A DNA stretch of 64,000 bases from Anthoceros angustus (GCA_010909165.1 MU008213.1:1-64000), one strand, 5' to 3'; counted from the stretch's first letter, positions 7,467 through 59,845 are shown. Program-made: numbers and translations. The notes: a model not told the origin generated them from the letters alone.

Positions 7467-8024
7467 TGTGATGCTAATCTGCACTTGGGTTTAGTGTTTG
7501 ATTAGCATTAATTAATCTAATTACTTATCTTTAAGTAAGTAATTAGTGTTAATTAATCTAAAGTGCTTATGTTAATTAAGCATTGATTAGTGTTAATTAA
7601 TCTAATGTGCTTATGTTAATTAAGCATTGATTAGTGTTAATTAAACATGGTTAGCAATAGCTAAGTGGATAAGCTCAAGTAATATGCTTTGGCATGGCAT
7701 ATTATAGTGTATTCTTAGGATACAATAGCTAAGTGGATAAGCTCAAGTAATATGCTTTGGCATATTCCTTGCATATTATAGTGTATTCTTAGGATATTTC
7801 CGGTATGCTTGCCAATAGGATATCTTAGGAATATCGATGCCAGTCTAGTATATAGACCCTTCCATTGAGGACAAGCTCGGATCATAGCTTGTCCTCTAGA
7901 TGCTCTAAGAGGCGTTGTGAGGAGGCCAAAGCTATGACTCAGAGCGATGTGTGAGGAATTTGCGTGTTGTTCGTGGGGAGGTGTGTTTGTGCCACGACGC
8001 GAGCTACTCCCTCCTGTTGTTACA
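7467..8024 (+). repeat. Gypsy-DNMT 5' LTR
   Basis: TGT...ACA termini; colinear with 15481-16062; TATA-like TATATAG at 7849; internal AT-rich tandem repeats. Confidence 0.85.
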
Positions 8025-8029
8025 AGCTA

Positions 8030-8500
8030 TGATCTAGGCGTGCTAGGCGTGCTGGGCGTGCTAGGCGATGCTAGGCGGCTGGGCGATGCTAGGCGATGCT
8101 AGGCGTGCTAGGCGTGCTAGGCGATGCTAGGTGATGCTAGCGACCCTAGGCGTGCTAGGCCGTGCTAGGCGAGGCTACGAGGCACGCTCTTTAAGCAAGT
8201 AGGCAAGGGACTCTCAAGTGTGCCCAAGGCTTAAGGCCAAGGCCAGAGAGGCGAAGAAGCAAGTCAAGGCCAAGGAGGAGGAGAAGAAGCCCAAGGCCAA
8301 GGAGGAGAGGAGGCGAAGAAGCCCAAGGAGGAGGCGAAGAGTAAGGCCAAGGCCAGAGGAGAGGAGAAGAAGCCCAAGCCCAAGGCCAAGGAGGAGGCGA
8401 AGAAGCCCAAGTCCAAGGCCAAGGAGAGGAGGCGAAGAAGCCCAAGTCCAAGGCCAAGGCCAAGGAGGCGAAGCCCAAGGAGGAATGAGGCCTCCACAGG
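8030..8500. repeat. Low-complexity tandem repeats in the Gypsy leader
   Basis: (CTAGGCGTG/CTAGGCGATG)n at ~8030-8175, then GAAGAAGCCCAAGGCCAAGGAGGAGGC-type repeats at ~8230-8490. Confidence 0.85.
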
Positions 8501-8647
8501 GGCTGGCCTTTAAGGCCAACCAACCAAGGGAGAAACAAGAGTATTTTACTCTTGGGCCCCGGATTCAAGGGATAAGGGGAAGCGGATAGACATGGGTATG
8601 TCATCAGTCCATTTGATTTCACTTTCTGTCCAAAAGTCCTAGTTGTC

Positions 8648-8699
8648 GGCACCCCATCCAGGTACTGATCCACCCACGGTGCTTAACTCTGGAGTTCCT
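8648..8699 (-). repeat. 5S rRNA-like internal-control-region fragment
   Basis: rc AGGAACTCCAGAGTTAAGCACCGTGGGTGGATCAGTACCTGGATGGGGTGCC resembles the box A to box C part of 5S rRNA; 5S 5' and 3' ends are absent. Confidence 0.6.
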
Positions 8700-9099
8700 A
8701 TGCCTTTGCTATCCAACTCACCCAGCTCACATTTTTGACATATAGCCTGCAGAGTATTTCTATGCGATTTTAACATGCATAGATACTTAGAGGTTTCACT
8801 AATCACGATCTAAGATAGCGGGGTGTGTTAACCTTGATTAAGGGTTTGATCTAGCCACTAACCGCCTGGAGTGCATGCCTGGACACACTCGATCCGGACG
8901 GAGCTACCAACCAGCAAGTCCATCAGAGCGAATTCGAAGTCCCGACCAAGAGGGAGAAGTGCGAACAGCTCGATTTTGGTACCACCGAAGGACGCGGAGG
9001 AACCCAGCGACACAATCAACAATCTTTGAAGGATGTGGTGGCAACACACAAGACACGTTAGTCTTCGGGACAACTCGGTGAGCGGCAATGAGGAGGACT

Positions 9100-10830
9100 T
9101 GTCTCTTGGAGTCGTCAAGATGGGAGGAGACAAGGATCGAATGGAGTTGTTCACAGGACGGCGGGCACCTTGCCACGGAGGACTTCATCGAGAATGCAGT
9201 GCGGTGTGTGCGGAGATGGAATTGAAGACCGGATACACGAGCGGCTTCATCCAAATGCCAAGTACTTGGGGATGAAGCATTGGCGTGCTATCGCGAGCAC
9301 AAGGCGAGGTTGAGCGCACTGGAGGACCAGTGAGTAGCAGTTCAAGCTCCGAAGGAACCAGTATAGAGAGGCAGTGGCACCGAGTGGGCACGATCCCATC
9401 GAAGAGATGTTTGACATCTTCTGGAGTTTCCAAGCACGGATGAGAAGATCTCCGAGCTGACACACTTCAAGATGAAGTCAAGGGAGACTGCGAAGATGGC
9501 TTACCGAAGAATCGACCAGTTGGTACGTGACACCAAGATCATGAGTGACCGACTGGCTGCAGAGAAGTACTTGCAGGCATTGCCATATGCGCTGCGCATG
9601 AAGGTGCAACAAGCGGTGCACACGAAGGCAACACTACACCCTCAAGGAAGTGTACGAGATGGCGACAAGATAGGGCCCGACACTTTCTCTCGTCTTTGTT
9701 GCAAGTGATTACTCCGGCACAAGTAGGAGTGGTGGACGACATGACGCGGAGGTCAGTGGAGGAGCTCGGCGAGACAAGCCAGCCCCACACCAAGTGACGA
9801 GCCCTGCGTGAGGTGCCGAGGACGGACCATTCCCCTCATGAGTGCGAGCATGCATTCGGAGGAGTCAAGGGTGAGGAGCCATGCCCTAGGTGTGGGATGC
9901 AGGCACAATGAAGCGGCATGTTGGGAGAAGCATCCGAATTGCGGCCTACGGGTTATCGAGGCAACCCGGCCAATGCATCTGCGTCAACCTCATCCACAAA
10001 ATCGTGAGCAAAGGCGCCGTGGAGGAGGCACGGCGAAGTCCCGTGGACAAAAGAAACGGGAAGCATCAAAGAAGGCGATGGACATACGTGGCACGCCTTG
10101 CAAAGCTAGAGAAGTTGGTGCGGAAGGCGAAGATCAAGGAGAGCAGCAGTTCATCATCGGAGGACGAAGAAGATGAGCACAAGCTTGGATACATGGCGTG
10201 ACCGGATCCAAGGGCAGGAAGAAACCTCGGCTACGAGAGAAGATAGCTCGGAGGAAGAAGAGGATGTCTTGACACCGGTCACGGAAGACACGGAAGGAAG
10301 CTTGGGGATCCTCTTCCGAACCTATGCCAAGATGCCAAAGTCGTTTGAGCCATTGCCAAGAGCAACTGTGGGAGCAACATCAAAGTCCAGTGGGCGATGT
10401 GGAGAAACCCATGCAGATTCTTGTGAGACGATGGCACAAAAGCTTCGGAGATGCCATGTTTCACCTACAAGACATGGGGTTGAGCGTGAAGGAAGTCGGG
10501 GTTTGACTCGGCGGATGTTGACAACCCTTGAAGACGAAGCAAGTGTCGACAATGTGCCACAGTGGCAATGATGTCATTCGACCTCGGAGCCAAGCATCTC
10601 GTGGAGAAGCGGAATCTTGCAGTGGGAGTGGCTTTGGTCAACAATCGGAGAGGCACATTGAAATCAATGGATTCGCACCAAGGAGGGTGTTGATTGACAC
10701 CGAGCACGGTGATCGTTGGAAGAAGAGTGAAGGAAGCGTTGGGTCTCCACCAAGAAAGGTTGAAGGAAACCAAGTGGAAGATCCGGACAGTGGGACCGAG
10801 CATGTGTTGGGGTGACAAGGTACAAGCTGA
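9100..10830 (+). pseudogene. Gypsy-DNMT gag and aspartic protease (frameshifted)
   Basis: Gag-like EKYLQALPYALRMKV; zinc knuckle CPRCGM-(G)HNEAAC at ~9880-9925; protease RVLIDT at ~10685-10705 followed by VIVGRRVKEALGL. Confidence 0.75.
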
Positions 10831-11392
10831 AGGTTTCATTCAAACCAAGAAGCAGACTTCACCTTTGTCGAGGTACACCGCAGTCAATCAGACACTTTTG
10901 ATGTCTTCTTTGGGAGCGGACGCTTTGTACAAACACAGTCATGGTGGATTTGTGGACGGAGGCAGTCTACTATCGACCAGTGGAGAAGCTGGAGCAAAAC
11001 CGATGAACGGATTGCCCGCATCCCTCTTACTGCATGGCAAGGATCATGAGAACCTCATTGCCAACAGCGTCTACCCAGTGTTTGGCGCCGTAGTGAAGGA
11101 CACGCCATACGTGCTTGAACCTCTTGGCGTGTGTCTAACAACCGCAACTGACCTGATGGAGGATTTCGACGAGGAGGAAAACAAGCTAGGGTTGCAACCA
11201 CCCTCGGAGGAGGTTCTTCAAGTCACTCGGACGGAGCTGGTGACTGCAGCAATGAGCCGTGCAAAAGCTGTGGAGGATGGTGCAAGAGGACCAGTGCCCT
11301 ATGAGCCGGAGAACTACTGTAAGTTCTTGCCTAGGGTTGAGCCTGTTTGTGACCTAAACACCCAGGTCATCACATGGCGACCTCGGGAAGAC

Positions 11393-12315
11393 GGCATAGT
11401 GCTCGTGGAACTCTTTGGAGGCATCGGCACGGCTTGGGCGGTGCTAAAGTGTGGCATCAAAGTGCGAAGATACGTGCATTGTGACCCGGATCCAAAAGCA
11501 AGGATTGTGTCACGAGCGTAAGAGACTTGATGGGGAGTACCTAACCTCCGTGGGAGTCGGTGAAGGGTTACCGGAAGGCGCGATGGATGTTCGCATGATA
11601 GGGTTGTCCCATTTGAGTTGTCTTGGGCAACCGGTGGACCTTGTCATCGCAGGTTGGGAGTGTCAAGGACTATCCTCTGCAGGCAAGGGTCAAGGTCTGA
11701 AGGATCCACGAACAGCATTGTTCTATGACCTGATGAGGATCTTGCGCTTGATCCAGAAAGGGCAAGAAAGGCCTTGTGGATACATGTTGGAGAATGTGCC
11801 AGCATGCATGAGCGTGAAGAAGCAAGTCCAGGAGGACTTTGCCACGATCCGAGGAGTGTTGGGTCAGGAGCTTCTATTGGATGCAGCTCAATTTGGTTCG
11901 AGGGCTCATAGGTTGAGGTCCATGTGGACTAACCTTGCTCCCTTGGAACATTTGAAGTGTGCGAGGTCGTTCACCAAGCGACCTAATCATGTTGTCAAGG
12001 ATGTGCTAGCATCGGAAGGCATGCCCAACAAGTCATCAAGGTGACAAGCCGCGCACTGTGAACACGCCTGGACACCCCATGGCGGCTTGGCCAACCTTTG
12101 TGTCCAAGTCCAAGTCTTACGCCTTCAGGAACCATGGCCCCGGCGTTGTGGTGGACAGACATGGCGAGGCCTTGGGAGAGCCAACAGCCACAGAGAGGGA
12201 GTTGGCCATGGGATTTGATGCCGGAGCCACGAAGACACCGGGAGTGACCGAGAAGGAACGGTGTCGATTGCTTGGGCAAGCATTTGACGTGAACATGATG
12301 ACCTGGTTGTTTAGC
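11393..12315 (+). CDS. DNMT3-like C5 cytosine methyltransferase domain within pol (frameshifted in this sequence)
   Basis: Motif I ELFGGIG (11408-11428); motif IV GWECQGLS (Cys codon 11661); motif VI ENV (11790); motif VIII DAAQFGSRAHRLRSMWTNL; motif IX ERELAMGF; motif X RCRLLGQAFDVNMMTWLF. All are in canonical order. Confidence 0.92.
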
Positions 12316-12479
12316 GCTGGAGTCGCTTACCAACTTCGAAACCAGAAGAAGGCGGGGTTGAAGCAGCGGGTTCGGTGGGTGAAGGACATTCCGGCACTCG
12401 CATCTCAACAGGAGAAGGCGAGTTTGGAGGGCAAGGAGAGCGAGCACGTGAGGCGTGCAAGCCATCGAGCCACATGAGT

Positions 12480-15100
12480 GGTTAACAGGGCGAGTTGAAG
12501 AGCAATCAAGCGCGTCTAAAGGAGTTGTTGGAGGCATCGCGACATGTGTTTGCTTTCACGCTTGCGGAGATGGGGAAGTACACCAAAGGGAAGTTCCACA
12601 TAGAACGACCACGGATGAACCAAGTGTTCCGCAGAGGCTGGCTCGCAAGGGTGAGTGGGATTTGGTTGAGAATCGATGCCAAGAGCTTCTCAAGCTAGGG
12701 CTGATTCGACGATCTAACTCGCGTGCAGCAGGCGCTTCGAAAAGAAGGATGAGAATGGATTGTGGACGGAGAGGAGAATGTGTGGTGACTATCGGCCGTT
12801 GAACGAGCGAATCCCACATGACCACTATCCCATGCCGACGGTGAAGAGATCTTCGACACCATTGGGTGCAAGTTCTTCTCAACATTGGACTTGAGGCTAG
12901 GGTTTCACCAAGTAGAGATCGCCAAGAAGACAAGAAGAAAACGCTCGGGCGTAGATTGCTTGTACGAGTGGAATTACATGCCATTTGGGTTGAAGACATC
13001 GCCAACGCAGTTCAAAGGTACATGGACAATGAGCTCAAGGACTTGCATTTCGCCAAGTGCTACATTGATGACGTCATCATCTTCAGCAATACCTTTGAGG
13101 AGCATCTACAACATCTTGAGCGTCTTTGCTAGGCTGCTTGTGGGTTGAAGGCCCATCCAGAAGTGTCGATTTGGAGAGGATAAGGTGTTGTACTTGGGTC
13201 ATTGGATCACGCGACGGATCTCGCCGCATGCCACCAAGGTGGAGGCAATCGCGCATTCCGTGCCAAACGACATCTCAAGTTGAGGGCATTCTTGGGTTTT
13301 GTTACTACGAAGTTCATTCCGCGGATGAGCGAGGATTGCGCCATTGAATGACTTGTTGAAGAAGTTGGTGACTTGGCGTTGGACTCAAGAGGAGGAGTCG
13401 CTTTCATGGAGTTGAAGGGTAGACTCATGAGCTCGCCAATTCTTGGTCATCCAAACTTGATGGCTGTTCGTACTTTACACGATTGGAGCAAGTACGGCAT
13501 AGGGGTCTTGGCAGATCAATGACAAGGAAGAGGAACATGTCATTGCCTATGCGGAGCAACAACCAGTGAGTCCAACTACTCGCCTATGAAGGAGAATGTC
13601 TTGCGGCATGTGGGCGTCGGACACTTTCGTCCGTACTTGTTTGGACATCAATTTCGACTAATCACCACCATCAACCCTTGCATTGGTTGATGACGAACGC
13701 CAAGCTTACGGAAAGGCGGCGGTGGGCTCTCATTCTCCGGGGAGTATGACTTTGTCATCGAACACCGAGCGGTAGAGTTCACTCTAATCTGATGGGTTGT
13801 CAAGGAATCCTCTACCTCGTGAAGACACTACAGGCCGCAAGATTCGGATGACGAGCAACCGGGAGAGTAGTCCAGATACCATGTTGGCCATGCGCATGAG
13901 GATCAAGACGCCTCCACTCATCGCTTTGTATGCGAGTCCGTCAGGACATGGGCGGATGCAATAGCGGTGACCTTCCTAAGGTCGGGAATTGCCACAAGGG
14001 CTTTCATCTCGAGCGGGCCAAGCTACGCGAGAAGGTGGCTCGGTACTATTGGAAGGAGGACATAATGTATGTCCGTGATTCTCGGAGATAGAATTGTACC
14101 CAAGCCGGAGGATCGGGTGAGACTCATCACCAGTGCATGAAGGCTTAGGGCATTTTGGTGCTAAGCGCACCTCTACAAAGGCCCACACACTTTTGGGCAA
14201 GGATGTATGGAGATGTGGAAAGGCTGGTCGCAGAATGTCGAGTGTGCGATCGAGTGAAGGCAAGGTTCACGACCAATGATGTTGTGCTTCACTCTCTGAT
14301 CCGAGGACTCTTCTGTGGAGTGTGGATCTCATGCCGGACATGCAGAGGCAGCGAAACAAGCATGTCATGCTAATGGTGGAGCATTTCAGCAAGTGGTGCG
14401 AGGTTGCCATCTTACCCAAGCGTGACTCTCGGCTTACCAAGAAGGCGTTCTTGGCTTGGTTCTTAGTCGATATGGAGCATGTGCGAGGTTCTCACCAGGC
14501 AAAGAATTCGTGGGGAATTTCAAGACTTGCTTGACAGAGCTTGATTGATCATCGACGTCGTCGAGATCATCCTCAAGCCGATGGACTTGCTGACGCTTGG
14601 TGCACCTTCAAGCGGCCTTGCGCAAATATTGTCTCACAAATGACCAAGACATGGGATGAAGGGATGCCATACCTAGTGCTAGGGGAGTGCAGGTGAGCAA
14701 TCAAGCGCCTTGAGCAATTTTTCACCATACTACTTGTTGTATGGGCGACAACCATTTTGCCAAACGTGAGGCAAGCAAGGCTACAAGCACCGTGGATTGG
14801 CGCAATGCGGATGATTGCCTACGAGACCGGAAAGGCGGGCGAGCTTTTCAACGGATCATGCCCATGGCAATGGAGAACCTTGCCATAGCGCAACACAGGA
14901 TCAATGCGCTATGCTTACACACGAGGAGGGACATGGAAACCCAAGGTGCGCAAGTTCGAAGTTGGAGATTATGTCTACACGCCGGGCAAGCCAGCAACAC
15001 CTTGGAGGTATCCACCAGAGTCATCTTGCGGGTCGTGCGAGTAGGCAAAGATGGAGTGCTTGAGCTCGAAGGATCCGATGGTCAAGATGGAAGGATCACC
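12480..15100 (+). pseudogene. Gypsy RT - RNase H - integrase (heavily frameshifted)
   Basis: DYRPLN, YMPFGLK, CYIDDVIIFS; RNase H DWSKYGIG/EGECLA-like; integrase HF...CRVCDRVK and VEHFSKWCEV. Confidence 0.88.
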
Positions 15101-15174
15101 TCAAGAACTGCGCACCATGCCACTTACCCAATTTGGACCCTCAACTACGGCCTACAATGTGGCGTCCACCCAAA

Positions 15175-15323
15175 GACTTGGAGTGTCGTTTGTGGACGTC
15201 GATGATGATGATGTAATGCTTCTTTGTGATCGGTGCAATAGGGGATACCACATGTTTTGTGTTCAACCACCTCTTGACGACATTCCCGAGGAAGATTGGT
15301 TTTGTGCACAATGCACTACATGA
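15175..15323 (+). CDS. PHD finger at the C-terminus of the Gypsy pol/integrase
   Basis: LLCDRCNRGYHMFCVQPPLDDIPEEDWFCAQC-stop; the first Cys pair lies across a frameshift at ~15185-15200. Confidence 0.92.
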
Positions 15324-15480
15324 GGTGCGTCGTGTGTAGTCTACTAATGATAATGTTGACTTGGAGTCTCACATTATCGGGGGATTGGTTTGCACCTATA
15401 TACTGCGTATTAGATTTGTTTGCTTGGTTGTTGGAAGTGCTTATATGAATTCAAGTGCTTACCTCGTGATGTCGTCTTAG

Positions 15481-16062
15481 TGTGATACTAATCTCGCACT
15501 TGGGTTTAGTGTTTGATTAGCATTAATTAATCTAATTACTTATCTTTAAGTAAGTAATTAGTGTTAATTAATCTAAAGTGCTTATGTTAATTAAGCGTTG
15601 ATTAGTGTTAATTAATCTAATGTGCTTATGTTAATTAAGCATTGATTAGTGTTAATTAAACATGGTTAGCAATAGCTAAGTGGATAAGCTCAAGTAATAT
15701 GCTTTGGCATATTCCTTGCATATTATAGTGTATTCTTAGGATACAATAGCTAAGTGGATAAGCTCAAGTAATATGCTTTGGCATATTCCTTGCATATTAT
15801 AGTGTATTCTTAGGATATTTCTGGCATATGCTGATGCCAATAGGATATCTTAGGAATATGCCGATGCTAGGGTCTAGTATATATAGACCCTTCCATTGAG
15901 GACAAGCTCAGATCATAGCTTGTCCTCTAGATATGCAATGCAAGAGCGTTGTGAGGAGGCCAAAGCTATGACTCCGAGAGCGATGTGTGAGGAATTTGCG
16001 TGTTGTTCTCGTGGGGAGAGTGTGTTTGTGCCAATGACGCGTAGCTACTCCCTCCGTTGTTA
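15481..16062 (+). repeat. Gypsy-DNMT 3' LTR, flanked on both sides by an ~85 bp direct repeat
   Basis: Colinear with 7467-8022; segment TTGGTTTGCACC...ACCTCGTGA at ~15386-15469 and ~16063-16153. Confidence 0.85.
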
Positions 16063-17688
16063 TTGGTTTGCACCTATATACTGCGTATTAGATTTGTTTG
16101 CTTGGTTGTTGGTCGAGGAAGTGCTTATATGAATTCAAGTGCTTACCTCGTGACACCCCGCATCGGCCCGCGACCTCGGGTGCCTCAATCCTCGGGATGC
16201 ACCTCGATCTCACGATCGGCGGCGCCATCCGACCTCGCGCCATCCAGCCTCGCGCCTTCCAGCCTCGCGCCATCCAGCCTCGCATCCGATCTGGCAGAAG
16301 ATCCATCACTCCAGCAAAAATTTCTGCTTGCTTTAGCCAGCCATCCTGTCATGATCCGCGATCAAGTCTTGCGGCGCTTCTTGCCAAGATCGGTGAGAAA
16401 AATCGCAAAAATTTGGCCAGGAATCCAGCCGTGCCGTCGCGCATAAAAAGGTGCTCGCCGAATCAAATTTTGAAATATTTGCTGGATTTATATGCTGGAA
16501 ATAGCTGAAAAATTGCTAATAAATTGGAGTTGCTTGATAAAATCTGCAGCTGACGCCGAGTGGAGGGTCCGCCCCACCGTGAGGGGTGAAACATGGGTGC
16601 TTGATAAAATCAAACAAGCACTTGGTGGCGGAAGGAGGATACTTGCGGAAGAAAGAAAGAAGGAAAACGTGCAGCCCGTGCACACCACTTGTGGTACCGG
16701 ATGAAGTTGTACCGACATTATCGGATCTTGGGAGGAACCGGATGACCCAAACTTCAAGATCGAATTTCTTGCAGTGCCAACCTATTGCAAAGAGTGAAGA
16801 CATACCGATGAAGAGGATGATATCCGGTGGTGCGACGCTCATGGAAAAATCCAAGGTCGTTGTGAGAGAAGTCAAAGTTACTGGTAAGTCAATAAATTGC
16901 AAAATAAATTGCATAAAAATTTTGAGTGCATAAAATGCTAATAAATGTGGATGTAGATAATCCGATAAAGCCAACATCACCAACTGAGGCCGAATATGAT
17001 GACTTCAAAATGAATGAAGATTCGGAAGAGTCAGAGGACTCTATAAAACCAGAAGAGACCCCTCAGCAGGCTATTTGTGAGGGTAGCCCAAGCTGGAGAT
17101 CACATCCTTGTGTAAATAACCGCATAGAGGATGTAATAGCAATAGAAGAGCCAAGGAGTGAGTAGGAAAGATGATACCAAAAACCGTAAACTAAACTAAC
17201 ATTTTCCTAATAATATCTCGCTATTTTGCGGTGTAGATAAGAGTGTGGGCACAAGCCATGTGAGATTTGCCCTACCTCTCGACCTACTCAAGAGAGAGCA
17301 AGTGCAAAAGGAAAATTCCTAGTTCCTACACCTGAAACTTATGCAAGGCAACCTACTTGGTTCTTCCGGAGGAAAGGATGACCATGAAGTTCCCATGGAG
17401 TATGTATGTGAAAAGAGAGGATTAAGATGATGTGGTTAAGTGCTTCCCATGTGAAAATATGAAGGACACACCAAACACTTGTACAGTAAGTAACCTAACG
17501 ACTTAAGTACTATCTTTTCATCATTTTCACTTTATAACCCATGGTGTGTATTGTAGGATCCTTCTGGGTATTAGAAAGAGAGGATAAGCAGTACAGTGAG
17601 GACTACATAGAGTTAGGAGAGGAAATTTCTATGCTAGACAAGATGTGTGGACTATAGAAAATACATTGACACATACTAGCTAGCTGAC

Positions 17689-22928: not shown

Positions 22929-25163
22929 ACAAGGCAGGAAAGCGTCATCTTGCGACAGCTTGCAGAGCTTCGAGCACGCACCAGGAAGCAGGACGACTTC
23001 ATCGACCGACTCGCTGAAAGCATCAAAGAGCTCCACCTGTTGTGCGAAGGCCACTCAGTAGTGGAGAACATGTCCAACCGAGTCGGCCGCGTTCGTCCAT
23101 TGGTGTCCAGCACCCTCCTGTAAATTTTGTCCTTGTTTATGTCTGATAGATCAGAGTGGTTTGATGATGTTGTGGATGACATCGCTTTTCTCTTTGCTGA
23201 TGCCACCACTTATGCTTATTGGGATTTCTCACCACGCAATCTCTTAGAGCTTGAGAGCGAAGCGTCTGATCATCAAGGATGCCTTGTCATTCACCACAGT
23301 GATGGCAGGAGCCAATCCTCCTGCAGCTGCACCCCCTGCACCCTTAAAGATAGAGTTCAAGGACAAGGATAGGTTCAATGGAACTGATTATAGCATCTGG
23401 GTCATGAGACTAACACAAATATTTGAGGAGCATGAACTGTTCTCCATTGTTGATGGAACAGATCTCAAGGTCACTGTACCACCTAGGTCTGCAATGAAAT
23501 CCTAGCTTGGGAGCGGAAGGATAGGCGTGCTAGATCTATTCTCATAGCTGCCTTGGATAAGAACATGATGCCCCACACCATCAACGCTAAAACAGCTCAT
23601 GATGTGTGGAAAGTGTTCGAGTCTATATATCATGACAAGAGTTCAGCGTCTCTAGAGCACGCTCACAGAGACTTATACAACCTCAGGATGCGTAACAATG
23701 AGCCTGTTGAGGCATACATTAATAAGTTCCGAACCCTCAGAGCTAACCTTACTTTCTGTGGCTCCGTCTTGACAGAAGTTCAGGCTGCCACTTGCCTGTT
23801 GGCAACTCTTCCAGAAAGCTATCAACACTTTGTGGGCAGCCAAAATGCCACAACTCATGCTGCTATTCAAGCTACAGCTGCTGGACAGCAACCCAAGGTT
23901 ACTCTTGAAGAAGTTATTGGTGCTCTCATATCGGAGGAGCGTCAGGAGTCTCCACAAGTCAAAGAGTTCCACCTCGTGAACACACGAGTGCTGTTCTCAG
24001 GACGTGGACGTGGAGGTTTCCGTGGCAGAGGTCGAGGACGTGGTGCTTACCAACCATCTCAGCGAGATGCAACTGCCAAGAAGACTTTTGTTTGCAACTG
24101 GTGCAAGATCCCCGGCCACTATGAGCGTGACTGCCGGAAGAAGAAGAATGGAGAACCGAAGCGTGACCACCCTCCAGAGAGTAATGTCACCGTCAGCAAG
24201 GCTAAGCAGCCCTCTATCCTAGCAGTCTGCCTGTCATCTACACAAGTTCAGTCAGATGCTTGGTTCTTAGACTCTGGAGCCACGAGTCATATCTGTTTTC
24301 ACCAAAATGCCTTTTCTGTTTTCACTCCTGCTAGTGATTCTCAATAGTTTGTGCTTTTGGGTGATGATAGTGGACTTTCAATCAAGGGATCAGGCTCCGT
24401 AGTTATAGCCTTGCCAAACTCTTCACAACTCACCCTTACAGACGTCCTTTTTGTCCCTTCCATGACCAAGAATCTCATGTCTGTTTTAAAAGTTGACGCA
24501 GGAACACAAATGCCGAGTGAACTTTGATCATCAAGGATGCCTTGTCATTCACCACAGGTCAGGTCACACCTTGTTTTCTGGTTCACCTCACCATGATCTT
24601 TATCTGCTCAATGTTCAGACAGTCGTTTCTTTTCCTCATACCGTCAATGCCACACAAACCTCATCTACTCAACTCGGCATTGTCGTCTCGGACATGTTAA
24701 TTTTCAACGTCTTAGTTCCCTCTTGAAAGGTGAGACTTATCGTGAACCTCTTTCCTTCTCCTTTGATAAGGATGCTTTCTGAAGCATGTCAGTTTAGTAA
24801 GGCACATTCCCTACCTTTCAAGGATAAGGCCCTTAGCCGTGCTGATGGCCTGCTACATACTGTGCATAGTGACATCTGCGGACCCATGTCAACTGCTTCT
24901 TTTGGTGGAGGTAACTATTTTATCACCTTTATCGATGAGTGGAGCAGATAGTGTGTTGTCTATCCTCTTCGCCACAAGAGTGAAGCTTTCGACTGTTTCA
25001 AGCAATATGTGGCATTTGCACAGAGGTAGACTTCAACTAAGGTTCGCATTCTCAGGACAGACAATGGTGGTGAGTACACCAGTACTGCTTTTTCTTCATT
25101 CTGTCTTGAAGAGGGCATCCTTCACCAGCTCACAGTACCCTACACACCTGAGAAGAATGCCTT

Positions 25164-27278
25164 CAACAGCGTCTCTCAGCATAGGGGTTATTCTCCATTA
25201 AAGGGGTTTGGGTCCCTAAAGACCAAAAATGACCCAGCAGGCCAAAATGCATCATCTTTAGCAAAACCACTCTTTAGACATGTCTTGAAAGACATTGACC
25301 ATGTTATTTTCTCGTGAATACTTACGCTATGTGGTTGTCAAGAAGGTTCATGGATTTCACCTTCACAAGGAAGGGATTTCAAGGATTTTTAACGGTGCTA
25401 GGAATCCTAAACACCTCTTTCGCAGCGATAGTACTTCCTAGGTGAGAAGAGGCAAACCAAACAAAATTAGTCCAGAAAGTTAAACCATACGGACGTCCGA
25501 ACCAACACGAAAAGTAGCAATTGCGAAAAGAAACGGACGTCCGGCGCAATTGTGAGAGAACATTAACCGATAGCTTGATCATGGCCATCTCGAGAGGACC
25601 AAACTACGACTCTAAAAGTAGCCGACGTTGCACCGTGAGTACACAACCGGATCTCCATTGTTAGAGTGAAAACATAGAAGGAATTGGAACAATGCGCGGA
25701 CGCTCGCACATTGGCGCGAGTCTGAAGCTCCGGACGTCCGGCGCATTTTTAAGACCCCAATCTTGTGGGCGTCCGAGATGGAAATGGTGGAGTGGATGGA
25801 CGTCCGAAATGTATATATATTGTTTGTCTTCTTGCATCTCGGATAGGTGGATAGACTCAATGGCATAAGAACTCCAAGGTTAAGCACCCTTGGGTCGGAT
25901 CGATAGGATGGGGTGCTTGACTTTGGTGCTTTAGAATTCCTATGCACTCTTGGGTCGATTAGTACTAGGATGGTTTGCTTGTTTTGGCGCTTTGAAAACT
26001 TTGTAACAACTCCACTGTTAAGCAACCTAGAGGCGTATCAATACTAGGATGGAGTGTTGATTTTAGTGGTTTGAAAAATTTGTAAATCATCCGGTATCTA
26101 GGCGTAAAGTCATGAATATTATTTTGAAAATCATTTGTTGGTTGATGTTATATTCCCACATTCGCTTTGTATACAACATGTAAAACCTTTTGGCCTTACT
26201 CTATGTGCCCACCGATGACTTGCATGGATCTCTTTGATTGGTGCGCCAAATGTCCGCTCATTCGAGTTTGATGCACGATAGATGCATAGGCCTTGGTTTC
26301 TAGATGAGCTACATTTTCCAAAATTCGACATGTATGATGGTGGTTTCTAATGGCCAACCTTTTGAAGACGACAATGTTTCACAATGTTTTGCAGAGAAGC
26401 AAGAAAATAAATAGAATAGATGATTTGTCCTTGAGTAATGAAAGCCCGTCGGATGCAGTCGAACACAAGTATAAGAGAGCATCTGCGCCACTGCGAGCCC
26501 TAGTGAGAGCCAGTATCTCGAAGAAAGAGGGCTGCCCGAGTGGGGTTTTGACCAAATGGTGAGTATTTTAGTGAGGCTCAAGGAGGACTCTCTATACCCA
26601 CCGTGACGCCCACTATGTGGTGGCGCAGCTAGGTGTTCGAGACGAACTATAGCCAAGCTTCGCCAGAGATTTTGAATTTAAGATCGACTTGCTCCATGTG
26701 CCACCCATGGATAGATTAAGGTTGAAAGCATGCGGACTTGACAAGAAGAAATGTAAGCTCAAGAGTTTGATCAAGAACGGTTGAGGAGGCCTCACCATCC
26801 TTTACCTTGTCCAATCACCTGGGGCCTAATCTGCAGATCTAAGTGCGGCTTATCTCCGACACGGAGGGGCCAGTCGACAGGTATGCCGTGCAGGATTGCT
26901 CAATCACGGGGTTTGAAAAGAGAATTGATGTGAGTGTTGGTGCGGTGGCAAGTGTGCACAAGCAACTTGAACGAAAGTGATTGCCTACACAAGTATTGAC
27001 GCAACCCTCTCCAAACCCGGTGTATTGCACCTCTTTGGAGTATAAGTGCGCGGACGTCCGCACTCTTTGGAGCATAAGTGCGCTACCATCCGCCCACTTG
27101 GTACAAAGGTGTGTCCGCATTTGTGCGGACGGTGGGCACATTAGGTCTTCTTTGGGCTCGGATGCATGGGGTCAGGTTCGCAAATCACTAAAAATGTTGA
27201 AATGAGACATGTGCATTTACGGATGGTTAATAAAATGGGGTTCGAGACAAACCCTATCTTTGTGAAAACATGCTCTTC
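25164..27278. mobile_element. Unclassified ~2.1 kb insertion in the Copia-A integrase
   Basis: Integrase reads YTPEKNA at ~25141-25162 and resumes ERRMWTLQEA at ~27281. The insert has repeated GGACGTCC palindromes and 5S-like boxes. Boundaries are approximate. Confidence 0.75.
25867..25916 (+). repeat. 5S rRNA-like fragment (same family as 8648-8699)
   Basis: AAGAACTCCAAGGTTAAGCACCCTTGGGTCGGATCGATAGGATGGGGTGC; extra TACTAGGATGG (box C-like) at ~25962 and ~26043. Confidence 0.6.
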
Positions 27279-28935
27279 TCGAGCGAAGAATGTGGACTTT
27301 GCAAGAAGCTACTCTTGCTTCACTTTCCTTTGCTGGACTTACTCGTGGGTATTGGGCTGAGGCTTTGATGGCAGCTAATTATGTTCAGAACCGCCTTCCC
27401 ACCAAGGAGCTTGGCCTTGTCACTCCTTTGAATGCTGGACAGGCAAGAGACCTCGGGTCAACCATCTTCGAATTTTTGGTTCACCTGCATATGCCCTTGT
27501 TCCTCCAGCACAGCGGACCAAGTTAGATCCTAAGGCTATCAAGCACATCTTTGTTGGCTACTCATAAGAGGTTAAAGGATATAAACTCTTCAACCCTACT
27601 ACTCGTCAACTCATTTTATCACGTAGTGTGACCTTCCACGAGGCTGCCTTACTTCGTCGTCATTCTGCTTCTTTATCTTCGGATGCTCTTTCCTCTCCTG
27701 CACTTATTTTTGGTATTGACGGTTCCAATCTTGCTGCGGATGATGAAGTTAGTTTCTATGACGATGAGGACTCTCCTACTTCGGATCAAGGGGGGGCTGC
27801 TGTACAACAACAACCTGTGCAACAACAACAACAGCCTGCTGTACAACAACAACATGTGCAACAACAATAACAGCCTGCCCCAGATCAGCAACAAGCGAAT
27901 GTTGATCATGATGAAACAGTCACGACTGACACCAGCCATGATGATGAAGAGGCTAGTACAGGTACTCCTGATGTTGAGGAGACTGTTGTCATTGACAATT
28001 TAGATTTTGATCCTGAAGAGGAGTGTCCTGCTTTACGTCGTTCTACACGTATCCGTAAGCCTAGGTCAGAATGGAAGGAACCTCCACCGCCTGTGTAGTT
28101 ACATCCATGAAGCGCCAAGAGTCATTTCTCTAGGAGAGCCTGCTACCTACAAGGAAGCCTTAGAAGGTCCAGAGGCACCCTTTTGGCAAGCTGCCATTGA
28201 CTCTGAGTACAAATCACTCATCAAGAATCAAACTTGGAAGCTTGTCGACCTTCCTAAAGGTAGAAAGCCTGTAGCATGCAAGTGGGTGTTTAAAAATAAA
28301 CTAAACATAGATGGAACTGTAGGGAGGTACAAGGCACGTCTAGTGGCAAAAGGATATAGTCAAGTTCCTGGCCTTGATTACAATGAGACGTTTGCACCTG
28401 TAGTCAAGTCCACATCTGTTAGGATCCTCCTGGCTATAGCAGCTCATTACAACCTTCTAGTCCATCAACTTGATGTCAAAACTGCCTTTCTGAATGGCTT
28501 GCTCGAGGAGGACATCTATATGAGTCAGCCAGAGGGTTTTGTCATTGATGAGGACAAGGTTTGTAAGCTTCTCAAGACACTTTATGGACTCAAGCAGGCG
28601 TCAAGAGCCTGGTACGAGGTATTTCATAAGCTTCTGATTGAACTGGGCTTCACCTGTTTGGACTCGAACACCAGTGTGTATATTTTGCGTAATGGAGGAT
28701 TTCCTTATACTTACTGTTTATGTGGATGACAACTTCCTGTTTAGTAATTCTGCTAGCCTGATGGCCCGCATGAAGCATATCCTCCTTTCACAGTTTGAGA
28801 TGACAGATCTCGGTGAGTTGACCTTTTCCTTGGGTGTTCAGTTCCATATGAACAAGACAGATGGCACCATCGATATTTACCAGGAGCACTTTGTCACTCA
28901 ACTGTTGGAACGTTTTCACATGGTCGATGCTAAGC

Positions 28936-29145
28936 CTGTTGCTACCCCCATGGCACTTGGCGAGAAGCTTTCCTTGGAGCAATGCCCGACTACTGAGGAA
29001 GAGAAGTTGGCCATGAGCGAGGTACCCTATAGACAAGCTGTTGCTACCCCCATGGCACTTGGCGAGAAGCTTTCCTTGGAGCAATGCCCGACTACTGAGG
29101 AAGAGAAGTTGGCCATGAGCGAGGTACCCTATAGACAAGCTGTTG
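28936..29145 (+). repeat. Perfect in-frame 102 bp tandem duplication in Copia-A RT
   Basis: VATPMALGEKLSLEQCPTTEEEKLAMSEVPYRQA twice; CTGTTG microhomology at 28936, 29038 and 29140. Confidence 0.95.
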
Positions 29146-29884
29146 GGTCCTTGATTTATCTCTCTGGATGGACCCGTATGGATATTACTCGAGCAGTTGG
29201 GGCTGTGAGCCAGTTTTTGGAGAATCCAGGCCAGCCTCATTGGACAGCGGTAAAACGCATTTTTAGATACCTCAAAGGTACCCCCAGGGCAGGCTTGCGT
29301 TTTGGGCGATCCAAGGACAGTTTATCCCTCACAGCTTATTACGATGCGGATTGGGCGGGGGATTCAGACACTAGGCGTAGTGTGGCAGCTTATTGTACCT
29401 TCATGGGCAACACAGCAGTCTCATGGAGCAGCAAGAAATTATCTAACATCTGTTTATCTTCGACAGAAGCTGAGTACGGTGCCATGACTCATGCTGCCAA
29501 GGAAATTATATGGATTCGAAGTTTTTTGAAGGGCCTTGGACAGCTTCAACCTGGACCCACACCACTTTGGGGAGACAACCAATCTGCCATCGCACTTTCA
29601 AGTAACCCTGTATTTCACGCTCGTTCTAAACATATCGAGATAAGTCACCATTTCATCCGTCAGGCAGCTGAACAAGGAGAGGTAATCGTGTCTTATGTTC
29701 CTACTGAAGACAATGTTTCAGATCTCCTTACAAAAGCACTCTCTAAGCCAGTACATGAAAAGCATACTTTTGCTGCTGGCATTTGTCCTATACCTGCTGT
29801 ATCAACCAAGGGCTCTGCCCATTAGCTAGGTCTTTCGGTTCTAATCCTCCGATTGGAGTTTGCCTTGTGTTTTTAGCAGTTTGA

Positions 29885-30679
29885 TCAGATCTTCACGTGC
29901 CTTATCAGACTTCGCAAACTCTTCCTTGAGGGCTGTCCAACCACAGGAGTGTTAGCAACCATCCTAGCAAGGCAGGCAGTCATACCAGTAGTGCTTTCAG
30001 TTAGGTACTTACAGCCATAGTCCACGAGAACTCCAGACTCTGTCATATGTGAGACAGGCTTGCTTTTCTCCTTTGCTGTTTTTGCCTTCTCCTTTCTTGC
30101 CACAGTCTGTTTCTTCTTTCCAGCCTTCACTCCCCATTCTCTCTCCATGTATTCCTCGTCGTCTGAATCCAGAGGCAAAGGAACCTTCATACAAGCCAAG
30201 AGTTCCTCCTTTGCTGCCTCCACAGCAACAGTCCCTACTCCTCTTTTGCCCTGTTGTTCAGTCTCCTTGCAGATCACCTTGTGGAACTCCACACTGGGGG
30301 CAGCGAACACTTGGCGTGGAGTGCCCTTATCATCGAAGTTTTGATCGCGCCTGGCAGTTTTGGCCTTCGAGCTCTCAGCTGGAAGTGGAGCTCCAGTGGG
30401 AGCATTGAAGGACACAATGCAGGAGTCAAGGCAGAACATATTGGGAAGGAAGGACTGGCGCTCAGAGAATTTCCTCATTGGAATCCAGGTCCTCTCACAG
30501 CTCATACACCTGAGGCCCTGCACCGAGTCCGACATGCTGAAGACTACAAGATTCTGGTGGAAGCAGCGGGAAGGACGCGAGCGAGAGAGGAAGATGGCAA
30601 GGATTGCCACCGAGAGTAAGAGGAGGAGCAGTTCTGTGATGCTCAGTGTCGCCATAGCTCTAGATATAGGCGGTAGCAA
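29885..30679 (-). CDS. Uncharacterised 264 aa antisense ORF inside the Copia-A 3' region
   Basis: Open ORF between the RNase H stop (29825) and the 3' LTR (30848); hydrophobic N-terminus (LLLLLLSVAILAIFL), CxxC, charged middle. No family recognised. Confidence 0.45.
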   Translation of the reverse strand: MLPPISRAMATLSITELLLLLLSVAILAIFLSRSRPSRCFHQNLVVFSMSDSVQGLRCMSCERTWIPMRKFSERQSFLPNMFCLDSCIVSFNAPTGAPLPAESSKAKTARRDQNFDDKGTPRQVFAAPSVEFHKVICKETEQQGKRGVGTVAVEAAKEELLACMKVPLPLDSDDEEYMEREWGVKAGKKKQTVARKEKAKTAKEKSKPVSHMTESGVLVDYGCKYLTESTTGMTACLARMVANTPVVGQPSRKSLRSLIRHVKI

Positions 30680-30847
30680 GCGTAAGCGAGGAGCGTAGGC
30701 GCAAGGAGTAATAGCAAGTTTGTTTTTGTTGGCTGCATGCCAGCCTCATGGGTGTGAGTACACTCATTTGCTCAGACACTTAAAGAACATTTCATCTAGT
30801 CCTCTAGCTTATATTCCCGTTTTGAAAATATTTCAACTAAGTGGGAG

Positions 30848-34375: not shown

Positions 34376-36516
34376 CTACTCACACATCTGAGAAACCAGA
34401 CCACATGACAAAGCCATCAGTAGCGCAGCGCCCTCTTCTTCATCGTCAGCCAAGCGTCGATGAAAACGCGGAAGACTCTCCTCATTGCCACCTTCAGCCT
34501 CATAATCAGAACTGGGTACACAGACAGAAGGCATACTGATAACAGACACCAAAGGTGCTGGTGGCCTGATTGAGCAAAGATTCGACATGGGAAGTTGTTG
34601 CCATTTCAGGCAACCTCTAGCCCATCTCCTTCTTGAACTGTCATCCACAGTACCAGGACTGGAGGCATCAAGTGGTAAAGATGACGTATTGATTCGCTTA
34701 CGAGCATGCAGGTCAAGGCTCGAACCTGCAATCTGCATACTCGCCGTAGCTTCTGCCCAAGCCTGTTCAGGTTCAAAAGCTGCTATGTTCTGCTTACGTT
34801 TTGACACTTTAGCAGACACTGGACTCCGTTGAGCAGATAAGGGGCATTGGTAACATGAATCCACATTCCCACTGGCTGCAGTACGCCGTCCGGCCTTCTT
34901 GTATCGTATGCCACATGCATTGCAAAGCGACTGCATTCCAGAATCAAGCAAGCAAGTTATAGATGGACTGATCTAGCTAAAAACTTCATCAGGACTGATC
35001 TAGCAACCAGCATCACACAGGACTGATCTAGCTACTAGCTTCACCATTAAGAAACAACAAATTCCAGAAGCACACCACAAAGCCATCTCAAAGACAGCTA
35101 AACCCGACGGCACTTCCCTAGATCACCTTTGGGCCTCCAGGACCATTTCTCCACAGAGGAGTTTTGACTGTCCCGCAGTGGGCACATGTCCTTTCCATGA
35201 TCCGACAACCAATTGCATCGACAGCTTGATGACGAGCATCAGGAAGTGACATTGGACTGCCAGTCACCATACCGATGCCTTTTGTTATCAAGGTTCCAGA
35301 TGGATCTCCTCTGACATTTCTGTTGCCAAAACCTGAAACAATTACAGGAGGTAACCACGGTTTCCTTGAGGCCCTGAGAGTGCTCCGGGCAGAGCGCTCC
35401 AGCAAGCTGCTACCAGCGAAAGAGTCAGATGCGTCCGAGCTCTCAGACGATTCCAGTTCCTCGGGGTAACTCTTTTGTTGAACAAAGCTCCAGCATGATC
35501 CCGTACTATTTCTGTTGGACGCCCCATCAGTAGAAAATTGGGATACTACAGCCTTAGATGCCTTATTCATAACTGAATTGTGACGCTGTCCCTCTCCTGT
35601 ACCTGTTGACTGGAAACAGATTCGTAGCCATCAGCTGCTTACACACTGATAAGTGCAGGGGTCAGAACCTTTTCCCCGATCAGTTCCACAGACAGCAGAC
35701 TTCTTCCACACACCACACCAGCCATGCCACATGCTTGACGACCAAAGCAACAGGCATGTCATAAAGAACAAAAGGTATACACAAATTGGTTACGCCCAGA
35801 TTTTGGAACCATATTGATCTCTCTTGACTAACCTGGAGGAGACAGCGGTCTTTGCAGCTTGTGATTGTCCATGGTGCCACCCCGTTGCTCCCTATCTGGC
35901 TTTCACCCCTTCCTTTTGAAGGTGCTGGGCTCACTGTTAGGACTGGATAACCTTCTATGACCCCAGACTTATTGTCACTGAAGGTCTTGGGTGTGTGGCC
36001 ACAGCCAGTGTCCTCCTCATCTATGCCTACAAGCTGGGGTTGAGTTGATTCAGGAGTGAAGACGACAAGATTGTTCAGCGGCTTCATATCACTATGGTCA
36101 TGGGCACATCCCACTCCTCCAGGCAGATCCTGTGACGCATCCGCGAAACTGTTCAAAATATAGGGGCCTGTGCAAGACAGTTGCAGAGAGATATCTAGAT
36201 CATTCTGTTGGGGGGTTCGAAGTGAGAGTGTACAATCCACCTGCCCCAATGTCACATCCCCACGACCCATATCCGGCTCACTGTACAAGTTGCAGAGAAT
36301 ATGTGTCCCAGAAGAAGCAAAGGAATTTGCACACACTGCAAGACTTGCATTATGGAGGGACGGAGGAGTTATTGTGGCCCCTCCATATTCCATGTTAGTC
36401 AGACCTCTCTGGCAGCCTACAGAGGTCCCTACAGGACCTCCATTATTGTTACATGACAAGCTTCCCCCAGAGTATGCAGGCAACTCAGCGCACGAACGAC
36501 CCTCAGAGTGCTGCAT
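34376..36516 (-). CDS. B-GATA: B-class GATA transcription factor with HAN and LLM motifs; predicted exons 36516-35833, 35609-35127, 34930-34376 (573 aa if this ATG is used)
   Basis: Zinc finger CAHCGTVKTPLWRNGPGGPK|SLCNACGIRYKK split by a phase-0 GT-AG intron (35126-34931). A second phase-0 GT-AG intron at 35832-35610 keeps the frame. HAN motif VDCTLSLRTP (~36240-36211); LLM motif EEEGAALLMALSCG near the stop. The start codon is inferred; an upstream exon is possible. Confidence 0.92.
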
Positions 36517-59714: not shown

Positions 59715-59845
59715 GCACGGTGGCGAACCATTCACCTCTGGAATTGTTACGAGTGGCGGTCAAGCAAAACGTGATACCCTCCGTTGCATTTGTCACAAAG
59801 CAACATCGGCTCGAGGATCGATGCGTGACCAGAACTCACAAGGCG
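59715..59845 (-). pseudogene. PHD finger of Gypsy element 2
   Basis: LLCDKCNGGYHV.CL...TIPEGEWF across small frameshifts. Confidence 0.8.

Follow-up and report, generated by a model that had tools for sequence, protein, structure and literature searches.

The interval 7467-16155 on the plus strand is a single copy of a Ty3/Gypsy-type retrotransposon that carries its own DNMT3-like C5 cytosine methyltransferase (DNMT) and a PHD finger. It lies in the window, the whole 64,000-nucleotide stretch of DNA that was analysed. Judged from sequence likeness, this identity together with membership in the Gypsy-DNMT3 (KnitGypsy-Dnmt3) family is highly probable. The copy is bounded by TG (at 7467) and CA (at 16155), and its domains follow one another in the order protease relic, DNMT, reverse transcriptase (RT), RNase H, DDE integrase and C-terminal PHD finger (Table 1). 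A preliminary description had read six C5-methyltransferase motifs, of which VIII-X resemble DNMT3, in order between protease and RT, and a PHD finger capping the integrase; Pfam matches and comparison with relatives bear this arrangement out, the protease being a relic.

Table 1. Coordinates of the element and of a second copy in the window
Feature	Position	Strand	Basis or remark
5' repeat A1; begins TG, AT-rich, internal sub-repeats of ~40 nt	7467-8022	+	aligns to A2
TATA-like box (7849-7856), followed ~30 nt on by a 13-nt stretch (7880-7892)	7849-7892	+	read from sequence
Primer-binding-site-like 13-mer	8022-8034	+	exact reverse complement of 7880-7892
gag-like segment	9415-9705	+	tblastn vs Logan contig L005, E 2.6e-11; blastp vs P0043, E 1.9e-4
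Aspartic protease relic, spanning a frame break; LIDT at 10687-10701	10639-10792	+	profile of relatives' pre-DNMT region
DNMT3-like C5 cytosine methyltransferase, motifs I-X in order	11354-12354	+	Pfam PF00145, E 1.2e-10 (match 11448-12041)
DNMT motif I	11405-11434	+	
DNMT motif IV	11649-11684	+	
DNMT motif VI	11781-11798	+	
DNMT motif VIII	11880-11936	+	
DNMT motif IX	12082-12108	+	
DNMT motif X	12259-12291	+	
RT, at least 4 frames; YIDD at 13061-13087	12473-13129	+	Pfam RVT_1, 1.8e-6 and 1.2e-3
RNase H	13400-13746	+	Pfam RT_RNaseH_2 0.002, RT_RNaseH 0.014; blastp and tblastn vs relatives
Integrase (zinc-binding region, rve core, C-terminal region)	14133-15100	+	Pfam rve, 1.3e-3
PHD finger, C-terminus of pol	15201-15314	+	Pfam PHD, E 1.3e-12, model positions 8-47
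Repeat B1, directly upstream of A2	15384-15469	+	93% identical to 16062-16153
3' repeat A2	15481-16062	+	aligns to A1
Repeat B2, element end, terminal CA	16062-16155	+	matches B1
Second copy, strongly diverged, same layout	57492-63224	-	5' end beyond window
Second copy, DNMT relic	63224-62609	-	
Second copy, RT/RNase H	62291-61245	-	
Second copy, integrase-like	60187-59996	-	
Second copy, B1	58199-58109	-	607 nt from B2
Second copy, B2	57602-57492	-	607 nt from B1

Pol domains and terminal repeats

The Gypsy pol order PR-RT-RNase H-integrase is present (RVT_1, RT_RNaseH, rve), with weak support for the protease, which was recognized from a pair of directly adjoining matches (E 0.01 and 5e-4) to a profile of the relatives' pre-DNMT region. 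The Pfam rve and RT_RNaseH matches are weak in the window copy but become clear when it is set against its relatives, in which RVT_1, RT_RNaseH(_2), Integrase_H2C2 and rve domains are found. The integrase, which contains in-frame stops and frame changes, was also recovered by tblastn with relatives P0005, P0045 and P0031 and by blastp of its pieces. The RT is closest to those of Closterium P0039 (55%) and P0065. A Pfam scan of the window copy returned no gag, protease or zinc knuckle.

The termini depart from a plain two-LTR Gypsy layout: the TG/CA ends are kept, but the repeats are split, giving the arrangement A1 ... B1-A2-B2 (split direct repeats) in both copies in the window. Neither a target-site duplication (at 7467/16155) nor a tRNA-type TGG primer site in the element nor a clear polypurine tract ahead of A2 was found; tRNA and Rfam scans of the window gave no matches and no tRNA gene. 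The stretch at 7880-7892, which is also present in A2, is complementary to the primer-site-like sequence that follows A1. This pairing, which involves the predicted transcript start, would constitute a Tf1-like self-priming signature. Reverse transcription of Tf1 in Schizosaccharomyces pombe is self-primed; the likeness lies in a 13-nt primer site immediately after the 5' repeat that is complementary to the predicted transcript start, and the difference is that here there is a sequence signature alone, with the transcript start predicted. The same departure from the two-LTR layout was described for KnitGypsy-Dnmt3, which has DIRS-like terminal repeats (Fig. 4c legend, PMC5890265).

Coding state and the methyltransferase domain

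No single open reading frame runs through the window copy: from the protease relic to the PHD finger the frame changes about nine times, and four or more in-frame stops interrupt it. These breaks, the divergence of the LTR pair (93% identity, gaps counted) and the loss of the PHD finger's first Cys pair could indicate that the breaks are real decay and the copy truly a dead relic. However, indels outnumber substitutions both between A1 and A2 (16 gap events, 9 substitutions) and between the window copy and contigs of the best DNA run (36 indels, 18 substitutions over 1276 nt), a ratio opposite to that of ordinary sequence decay. Further points against real decay are that the fraction of 31-mers shared with the best-sharing read set is only 0.41, and that the assembly, if the genome is that of A. 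angustus, is of the Nanopore/wtdbg type, polished with Pilon. Such a surplus of indels suggests long-read assembly noise as the source of much of the frame breakage, and noise probably accounts for a good part of it; true decay of this copy nevertheless has a likelihood not far below even.

The DNMT domain, for which a significant Pfam DNA_methylase match was obtained, is read in three frames, with two breaks near 11500-11590 and 12010-12040. Three pieces without stops, one in each frame, together cover the whole DNMT domain of P0031 in order (E 6e-12, 8e-33 and 4e-26). The best match in the PDB for a single piece is DNMT3A (1.2e-7), and a profile built from 35 relatives matched DNMT3A (1.1e-24) ahead of DRM (3.6e-14), HhaI (4.9e-11) and DNMT2 (3e-6), with no match to DNMT1. 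By these comparisons the domain is closest to DNMT3 among the characterised enzymes, with an unpermuted motif order. The likeness to DNMT3 is limited to the catalytic domain, as no Pfam match to PWWP or ADD was found in the element or its relatives. A word-indexed protein search with a DNMT piece returned no relative above 48% identity, and an atlas search returned generic DNA_methylase clusters only.

Motif IV of the window copy reads W-E-C-Q, with Glu-Cys in place of the canonical Pro-Cys, and in 89 relatives the residue before the Cys is Glu in 56 and Pro in 28. The substitution could mean that the module has lost its function as a DNA methyltransferase, and is instead a pseudo-enzyme or has another role, such as nucleic-acid binding, action on RNA, or contact with the host silencing machinery, which it could meet as a decoy or an interaction surface. 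Conservation of motif X is poor among the Klebsormidium nitens members (2018 supplement, PMC5890265), and the KnitGypsy-Dnmt3 domain produced no methylation in yeast, although its authors call that result inconclusive and human DNMT3B likewise failed in the same assay (PMC5890265). Against a loss of function, the catalytic Cys is present in 88 of the 89 relatives, and the motif VI Glu and Asn in 89 and 86; motif VIII (its R.R) and the motif I glycines likewise show little or no variation even among distant relatives. Common differences within the DNMT domain are also synonymous without exception (5 synonymous, 0 nonsynonymous; see below). The window copy itself keeps 36 of the 39 positions that are conserved at ≥90% in the family. 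A module that has ceased to be a DNA methyltransferase is considered rather unlikely.

Copy number, selection and host

The element belongs to a high-copy family present in the reads of at least two organisms, where it is represented at ≥92% identity by 1892 and 5387 short contigs, with all 30 bins covered. In organism B, the common differences (≥10% of depth) in supported segments comprise 9 synonymous and 2 nonsynonymous changes, and the DNMT figures given above come from the same comparison; this synonymous excess reflects purifying selection on the family. Transcription may be represented by four low-depth contigs, from a run that is possibly RNA.

It was also considered whether the DNMT segment came to this one locus by chance, e.g., as a fragment of a host DNMT3 or a nested insertion, and does not belong to the element. 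Nothing except the broken frames speaks for this. The second copy holds a colinear DNMT relic upstream of its RT, distant relatives carry the same order in single ORFs (P0031, Closterium P0039 and P0065), and read depth over the DNMT region equals or exceeds that over the RT region. The element also lacks introns and the PWWP and ADD domains, all of which a host DNMT3 would be expected to have. The private insertion that the preliminary description had named as a possible refutation is thus contradicted, and such an accident is exceedingly improbable.

A neighbouring gene bears on the host. It encodes a B-GATA factor in which the HAN and LLM motifs noted in the preliminary description are indeed present, together with a bryophyte-type Lys in the zinc finger; the combination of HAN and LLM in B-GATAs has been described for bryophytes (PMC12917456). 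A protein search with the N-terminal ORF of the GATA gene returned no match, and an exact-ORF look-up was likewise empty. The host is likely to be an Anthoceros-type hornwort, and hence a land plant. A streptophyte-algal host, with which the known range would not extend to embryophytes, would be in keeping with the closest named relatives of the same domain order, which are from Closterium, and the literature yielded no statement on whether algae possess HAN+LLM B-GATAs. The B-GATA with its HAN and LLM motifs and bryophyte-type zinc-finger Lys argues against an alga, and that alternative is very improbable.

No paper reporting a DNMT-carrying Gypsy element in a land plant was found in the literature. 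The earlier proposal of an embryophyte host that widens the range of these elements holds to this extent: the hornwort host is likely, and the element would be the first land-plant record of its kind. A search for DNMT3, DRM, MET1 and CMT in the supplement of the A. agrestis chromatin paper gave no matches. The window as a whole has a GC content of 48%, in keeping with the 49.6% of a hornwort genome; a protein search with a Copia RT returned matches of at most 63% identity, from angiosperms and oomycetes.

PHD finger, proposed mechanism and known systems

Six of the eight Cys4-His-Cys3 zinc ligands of the PHD finger are in frame; the first Cys pair is out of frame, and the Pfam match begins at model position 8. 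Relative L001 has the pattern complete, and the window PHD is 74% identical to that of L005. The top matches among solved PHD fingers were KMT2D/C, CHD4, ATXR5, UHRF1/2, BAZ2A, DPF3, KDM5A/B PHD1, PHF21A and AIRE, with no ING, BPTF or TAF3 among them. We take the listed fingers to be readers of the unmodified H3 tail (H3K4me0) rather than of H3K4me3. By its closest solved counterparts, the window PHD would belong to this unmodified-H3-tail class. The green-algal Chlamyvir clade of Gypsy elements was considered as a precedent for the PHD and dropped, as the literature gives it a chromodomain.

A mechanism may be proposed in which the methyltransferase, produced within Gag-Pol, has as its substrate either the newly made cDNA of the element or the copy that has just been integrated. 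The PHD finger, whose class recognizes H3 tails that lack K4 methylation, would anchor the integrase or the polyprotein in chromatin away from promoters, a role similar to that of the chromodomains of chromoviruses. The idea of cDNA self-methylation combined with chromatin reading is an already published hypothesis. As a whole, this mechanism is offered tentatively and is more probably incorrect than correct. The broadest reading is unlikely: that hornworts hold a recently active, high-copy Gypsy family of streptophyte-algal ancestry (relatives in Closterium and Klebsormidium), with split repeats and self-priming, that would write 5mC on its own copies and whose PHD would pick H3K4-unmethylated chromatin.

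If it were true, a transposon and not the host would be writing part of the methylome of a land plant. Transposon-encoded cytosine methyltransferases invert the usual picture of a host methylating its transposons, and those published so far are from dinoflagellates and one streptophyte alga (PMC5890265), together with the recent EpiLTRs. A conserved high-copy family in hornworts would carry the phenomenon into land plants. Hornworts can be cultured and transformed in the laboratory, and hornwort methylomes exist; it would therefore be possible to perform there the test of self-methylation that was left inconclusive for Klebsormidium.

The preliminary description was right that DNMT-carrying Gypsy elements had been reported from charophyte algae by de Mendoza et al. 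in 2018; the alga concerned is Klebsormidium (PMC5890265). Its view that the system is undescribed does not stand, because the kind was published in that year and hundreds of relatives are already in public green-algal and metagenome data. Three features may be new: the host, the Tf1-like self-priming site, and the pairing of a PR-DNMT-RT order with a PHD from the unmodified-H3-tail class.

An exhaustive protein search returned these hundreds of relatives, among them Closterium and Scenedesmus proteins and metagenome sequences; the survey of public data indicates a much wider distribution of the kind in green algae and environmental DNA than the literature records, with at least three domain layouts. 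Type A has the order RT-RH-DNMT-IN-PHD (the pol of Scenedesmus sp. PABB004, GCA_025491035.1, and many metagenomes), and type B the order PR-DNMT-RT-RH-IN (Closterium spp. NIES-53/54/65 and metagenomes). Both share with the window element a homologous DNMT (40-55% identity), RT and integrase, and type A also the PHD (50-62%). In a tree of DNMT domains, the window sequence falls with the PR-DNMT-RT set and outside the RT-RH-DNMT-IN-PHD clade (99% support). The window element differs from both types in joining the type-B position of the DNMT to a PHD, which was not found in the C-termini of the type-B relatives P0031, P0154, P0174 and P0039 (read or probed). Logan contig L005 is the only relative with the order of the window element and a PHD, and its DNMT segment is inverted.

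Among described elements, SymbioDIRS-Dnmt3 of Symbiodiniaceae likewise has a domain of DNMT3 type within the polyprotein of a retrotransposon, and this domain methylated CG de novo in yeast (PMC5890265); it differs in being a DIRS element with a tyrosine recombinase, independently captured, in a dinoflagellate host. KnitGypsy-Dnmt3 of K. nitens is similar in its unrearranged, intron-free DNMT3-type catalytic domain within a Gypsy polyprotein, its DIRS-like terminal repeats, the signs of purifying selection on its DNMT and its streptophyte host (PMC5890265). Compared by its published description, it is distinguished from the window element by the PHD after the integrase and the probable hornwort host of the latter; a PHD is not mentioned in the KnitGypsy-Dnmt3 paper or its supplements (PMC5890265), and of the 150 matches listed, none of the 30 whose source was checked was recognised as a K. 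nitens protein. The chromoviruses may offer a parallel for the other end of the polyprotein, as they also carry a histone-reader module at the integrase C-terminus, presumably for chromatin-guided integration; their reader is a chromodomain for H3K9me, whereas that of the window element is a PHD finger of the putative unmodified-H3-tail class.

Domain content and type of methyltransferase

A single retroelement, beginning with TG and ending with CA, occupies 7467-16155 (+). It holds no long ORF, and its coding content was read from stop-free pieces in changing frames (see table). The three methyltransferase pieces align in succession along the domain of a single relative (E 6e-12, 8e-33 and 4e-26), no motif of the series I, IV, VI, VIII, IX and X is missing or out of order, and 36 of the 39 positions conserved at ≥90% among 35 relatives are kept. 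The preliminary description, in which a cytosine methyltransferase lies inside a Gypsy pol and a PHD finger follows the integrase, is therefore confirmed in domain order and motifs; its protease is weakly supported, and the PHD finger is imperfect in frame.

Features of the element and of the second family copy
Feature	Position	Strand	Remark
Repeat A1	7467-8022 (556 nt)	+	second occurrence is A2
Gag-like segment	9415-9705	+	stop-free piece
Protease relic	10639-10792	+	weak, around LIDT motif; Pfam negative
C5-methyltransferase domain	11354-12354	+	complete; split over three frames
RT	12473-13129	+	with YIDD
RNase H	13400-13746	+	
Integrase	14133-15100	+	
PHD finger	15201-15314	+	first Cys pair out of frame
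Repeat B1	15384-15469 (~90 nt)	+	directly before A2
Repeat A2	15481-16062	+	recurrence of A1
Repeat B2	16062-16155 (~90 nt)	+	directly after A2
Second copy	57492-64000	-	strongly diverged; DNMT relic, RT/RNase H, integrase-like piece, B1/B2 pair; 5' end beyond window

The proposed resemblance to DNMT3 was borne out by comparison with solved structures. A single methyltransferase piece ranked DNMT3A, 3B and 3C above bacterial enzymes, and a profile of the 35 relatives matched DNMT3A best (1.1e-24), followed by plant DRM (3.6e-14), HhaI (4.9e-11) and DNMT2 (3e-6), with no match to DNMT1. The profile result is clear-cut, and judged by sequence the catalytic domain is DNMT3-like. The likeness is confined to that domain, as the element lacks the PWWP and ADD domains of host DNMT3; unlike in plant DRM, the methyltransferase motifs are not permuted. 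Motif IV reads G-W-E-C-Q, with Glu where the canonical Pro stands. The residue before the Cys is Glu in 56 of 89 relatives and Pro in 28, and 88 of the 89, distant ones included, retain the catalytic Cys; on this comparison the Glu is a family polymorphism and not damage to the element copy.

Terminal repeats and priming

The positions of the repeats give the order A1 ... B1-A2-B2, which differs from two plain LTRs and is the split-direct-repeat layout of DIRS/Ngaro-type elements. Because the diverged second copy also has a ~100-nt repeat pair (58199-58109 and 57602-57492, 607 nt apart) directly after pol, the split-repeat layout is a family trait. De Mendoza et al. note a DIRS-like arrangement of terminal repeats for KnitGypsy-Dnmt3 as well (PMC5890265, Fig. 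4c legend). The 13-mer at 8022-8034, immediately after A1, is the exact reverse complement of 7880-7892, and a TATA-like box at 7849 precedes the latter stretch by ~30 nt. This complementarity resembles the signature of Tf1 and would be compatible with self-priming of the Tf1 kind. No tRNA-type primer site, clear polypurine tract before A2 or target-site duplication was found for the element. Between the primer site and gag, GCTAGGCG-type units form a tandem array (8031-8177), and a repeat region at 8220-8485 is rich in Lys, Glu and Ala.

Frame breaks, further copies and signs of selection

The reading frame changes about nine times from the protease relic to the PHD finger, and in-frame stops number at least four. 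A1 and A2 differ by 16 gap events against 9 substitutions, and the longest contigs of the best-matching DNA run, X1, differ from the window by 36 gaps and 18 substitutions over 1276 nt; only 0.41 of the sampled 31-mers were found in that run. The excess of gaps and the low recovery of 31-mers suggest that much of the frame breakage is not real decay. Long-read assembly noise that polishing leaves behind in repeats typically produces an indel excess of this order, and for A. angustus Nanopore reads were assembled with wtdbg and polished with Pilon (PMC7027989). Apparent frameshifts in the repeats of this assembly should not be counted as decay.

Four public runs were sampled by mapping on window positions 9400-15399. 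Short contigs of ≥92% identity numbered 1892 and 5387 in two differently coded organisms (A and B), with every bin covered, and small shares of the sampled words were found in two further coded organisms. In the second copy the DNMT relic lies colinearly upstream of RT (motif VIII region E 4.9e-6, with weaker matches flanking it in the right order). The methyltransferase segment is thus not private to the copy at 7467-16155. Differences common in organism B (≥10% of depth) comprised 9 synonymous and 2 nonsynonymous changes in homology-supported segments, and 5 and 0, respectively, inside the methyltransferase domain, both counts coming from a small, filtered sample. This synonymous bias points to purifying selection on pol, methyltransferase included.

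Contig depth in organism B was even across 9400-15399. In organism A (run X1), summed contig depth, which is not copy number, was ~600-2000 over gag, protease and methyltransferase versus ~120-500 over RT to integrase; truncated or non-autonomous derivatives may account for the contrast. Further Gypsy-like fragments (RT/RNase H and integrase) at 44437-45910 (-) and 53090-53497 (+) are 25-34% identical to DNMT-Gypsy relatives, with no DNMT detected; they probably belong to separate Gypsy families within one transposon nest. A Ty1/Copia element at 23553-30700 (+) carries gag and RVT_2 (E 6.5e-58), its RT being at most ~63% identical to entries of the protein database.

Relatives, host range and proposed role

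An exhaustive HMMER search with a 198-aa methyltransferase piece returned 2122 proteins at E<1e-3, of which 301 reached E<1e-10; identity was 55% at best among the matches listed. Many were Gypsy polyproteins, which local probe comparison divided into two layouts. Type A (RT-RH-DNMT-IN-PHD) includes the "pol" protein of Scenedesmus sp. PABB004, a chlorophyte, and sequence from an NCBI assembly that lacks annotation; type B (PR-DNMT-RT-RH-IN) includes proteins from three strains of Closterium (Zygnematophyceae) as well as metagenome contigs. In the methyltransferase tree type A forms one clade (SH-aLRT 99), with the window copy outside it among type-B rows. The element shares the position of its methyltransferase with type B but has a PHD finger, none being present in the type-B proteins whose C-terminal stretches were read or probed; its integrase C-terminal pieces and PHD finger resemble those of type A (PHD 50-62% identical). 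The element's combination recurs in a Logan contig of SRR33208241 (L005, 777-6427), with gag, DNMT, RT-RH-IN-PHD and a 74% identical PHD, its DNMT segment lying on the strand opposite to the rest, an orientation due either to inversion within that copy or to an artefact of the contig. The Gypsy-DNMT kind is thus spread widely through the green lineage, with at least three layouts, and none of the papers searched describes this. In Closterium sp. NIES-54 (L003, 11616-12781) a type-B integrase is directly followed by two direct repeats of 248 nt, spaced 918 nt from start to start; their arrangement recalls B1-A2-B2, with no matching upstream A copy seen in the stretch examined.

The element had been put forward as an undescribed system, a claim that falls, as Gypsy-DNMT3 was published in 2018 for a streptophyte alga (de Mendoza et al., PMC5890265) and is so cited in 2026. 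No report of the kind from land plants, hornworts included, was found in the literature, most subscription journals lying outside the search, and the A. angustus genome paper (PMC7027989) mentions neither Gypsy nor methylation. The element is likely a Gypsy-DNMT3 member in a new host range, land plants. What appears not to have been described before is the combination of a PHD finger of the H3K4me0-reader class with the PR-DNMT-RT order, and the putative self-priming signature.

The neighbouring GATA gene, ~18 kb downstream at 34379-36969 (-), does carry both motifs ascribed to it: it is a B-class gene of bryophyte type with a HAN motif (VDCTLSL), an intron-split zinc finger and an LLM motif. 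Unlike vascular plants, Marchantia and Physcomitrium are described as combining HAN and LLM in one protein and as having a Lys within TxKTPLWR (PMC12917456); no statement on HAN plus LLM in algae was found in the literature. The 408-aa N-terminal ORF of the gene had no match among 5.8 billion protein sequences. The GC content of the window, 48%, agrees with the 49.6% of the 119-Mb A. angustus genome (PMC7027989). A land-plant host, a hornwort, is very probable. K. nitens is improbable as the host, since its 33 annotated DNMT proteins (de Mendoza et al. 2018 supplement, PMC5890265) would be expected to yield matches well above 55% identity.

The nearest solved relatives of the PHD finger are those of KMT2D/C, CHD4 (PHD2), ATXR5, UHRF1/2, BAZ2A, DPF3, KDM5A/B (PHD1), PHF21A and AIRE. 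All of these are known to bind H3 tails that lack methylation at K4, a state that the ADD domain of host DNMT3 recognises too. If translated within Gag-Pol, the methyltransferase would be present at the site of cDNA synthesis and integration, and its natural substrate would therefore be the element's own new DNA, a self-methylation hypothesis that is that of de Mendoza et al. (PMC5890265). In their work DIRS-borne enzymes produced CG methylation whereas the Klebsormidium Gypsy domain produced none, a result that they termed inconclusive because human DNMT3B failed too (PMC5890265). A DNMT module that is non-catalytic or otherwise diverted would fit that null result, and fits less readily with the conserved catalytic residues; we consider it rather unlikely. 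Self-methylation combined with PHD tethering is itself put forward tentatively, as less likely than not. By tethering, the PHD finger could plausibly keep the integrase, and possibly the methyltransferase too, off active promoters, and would then act much as the chromodomains of chromoviruses do.
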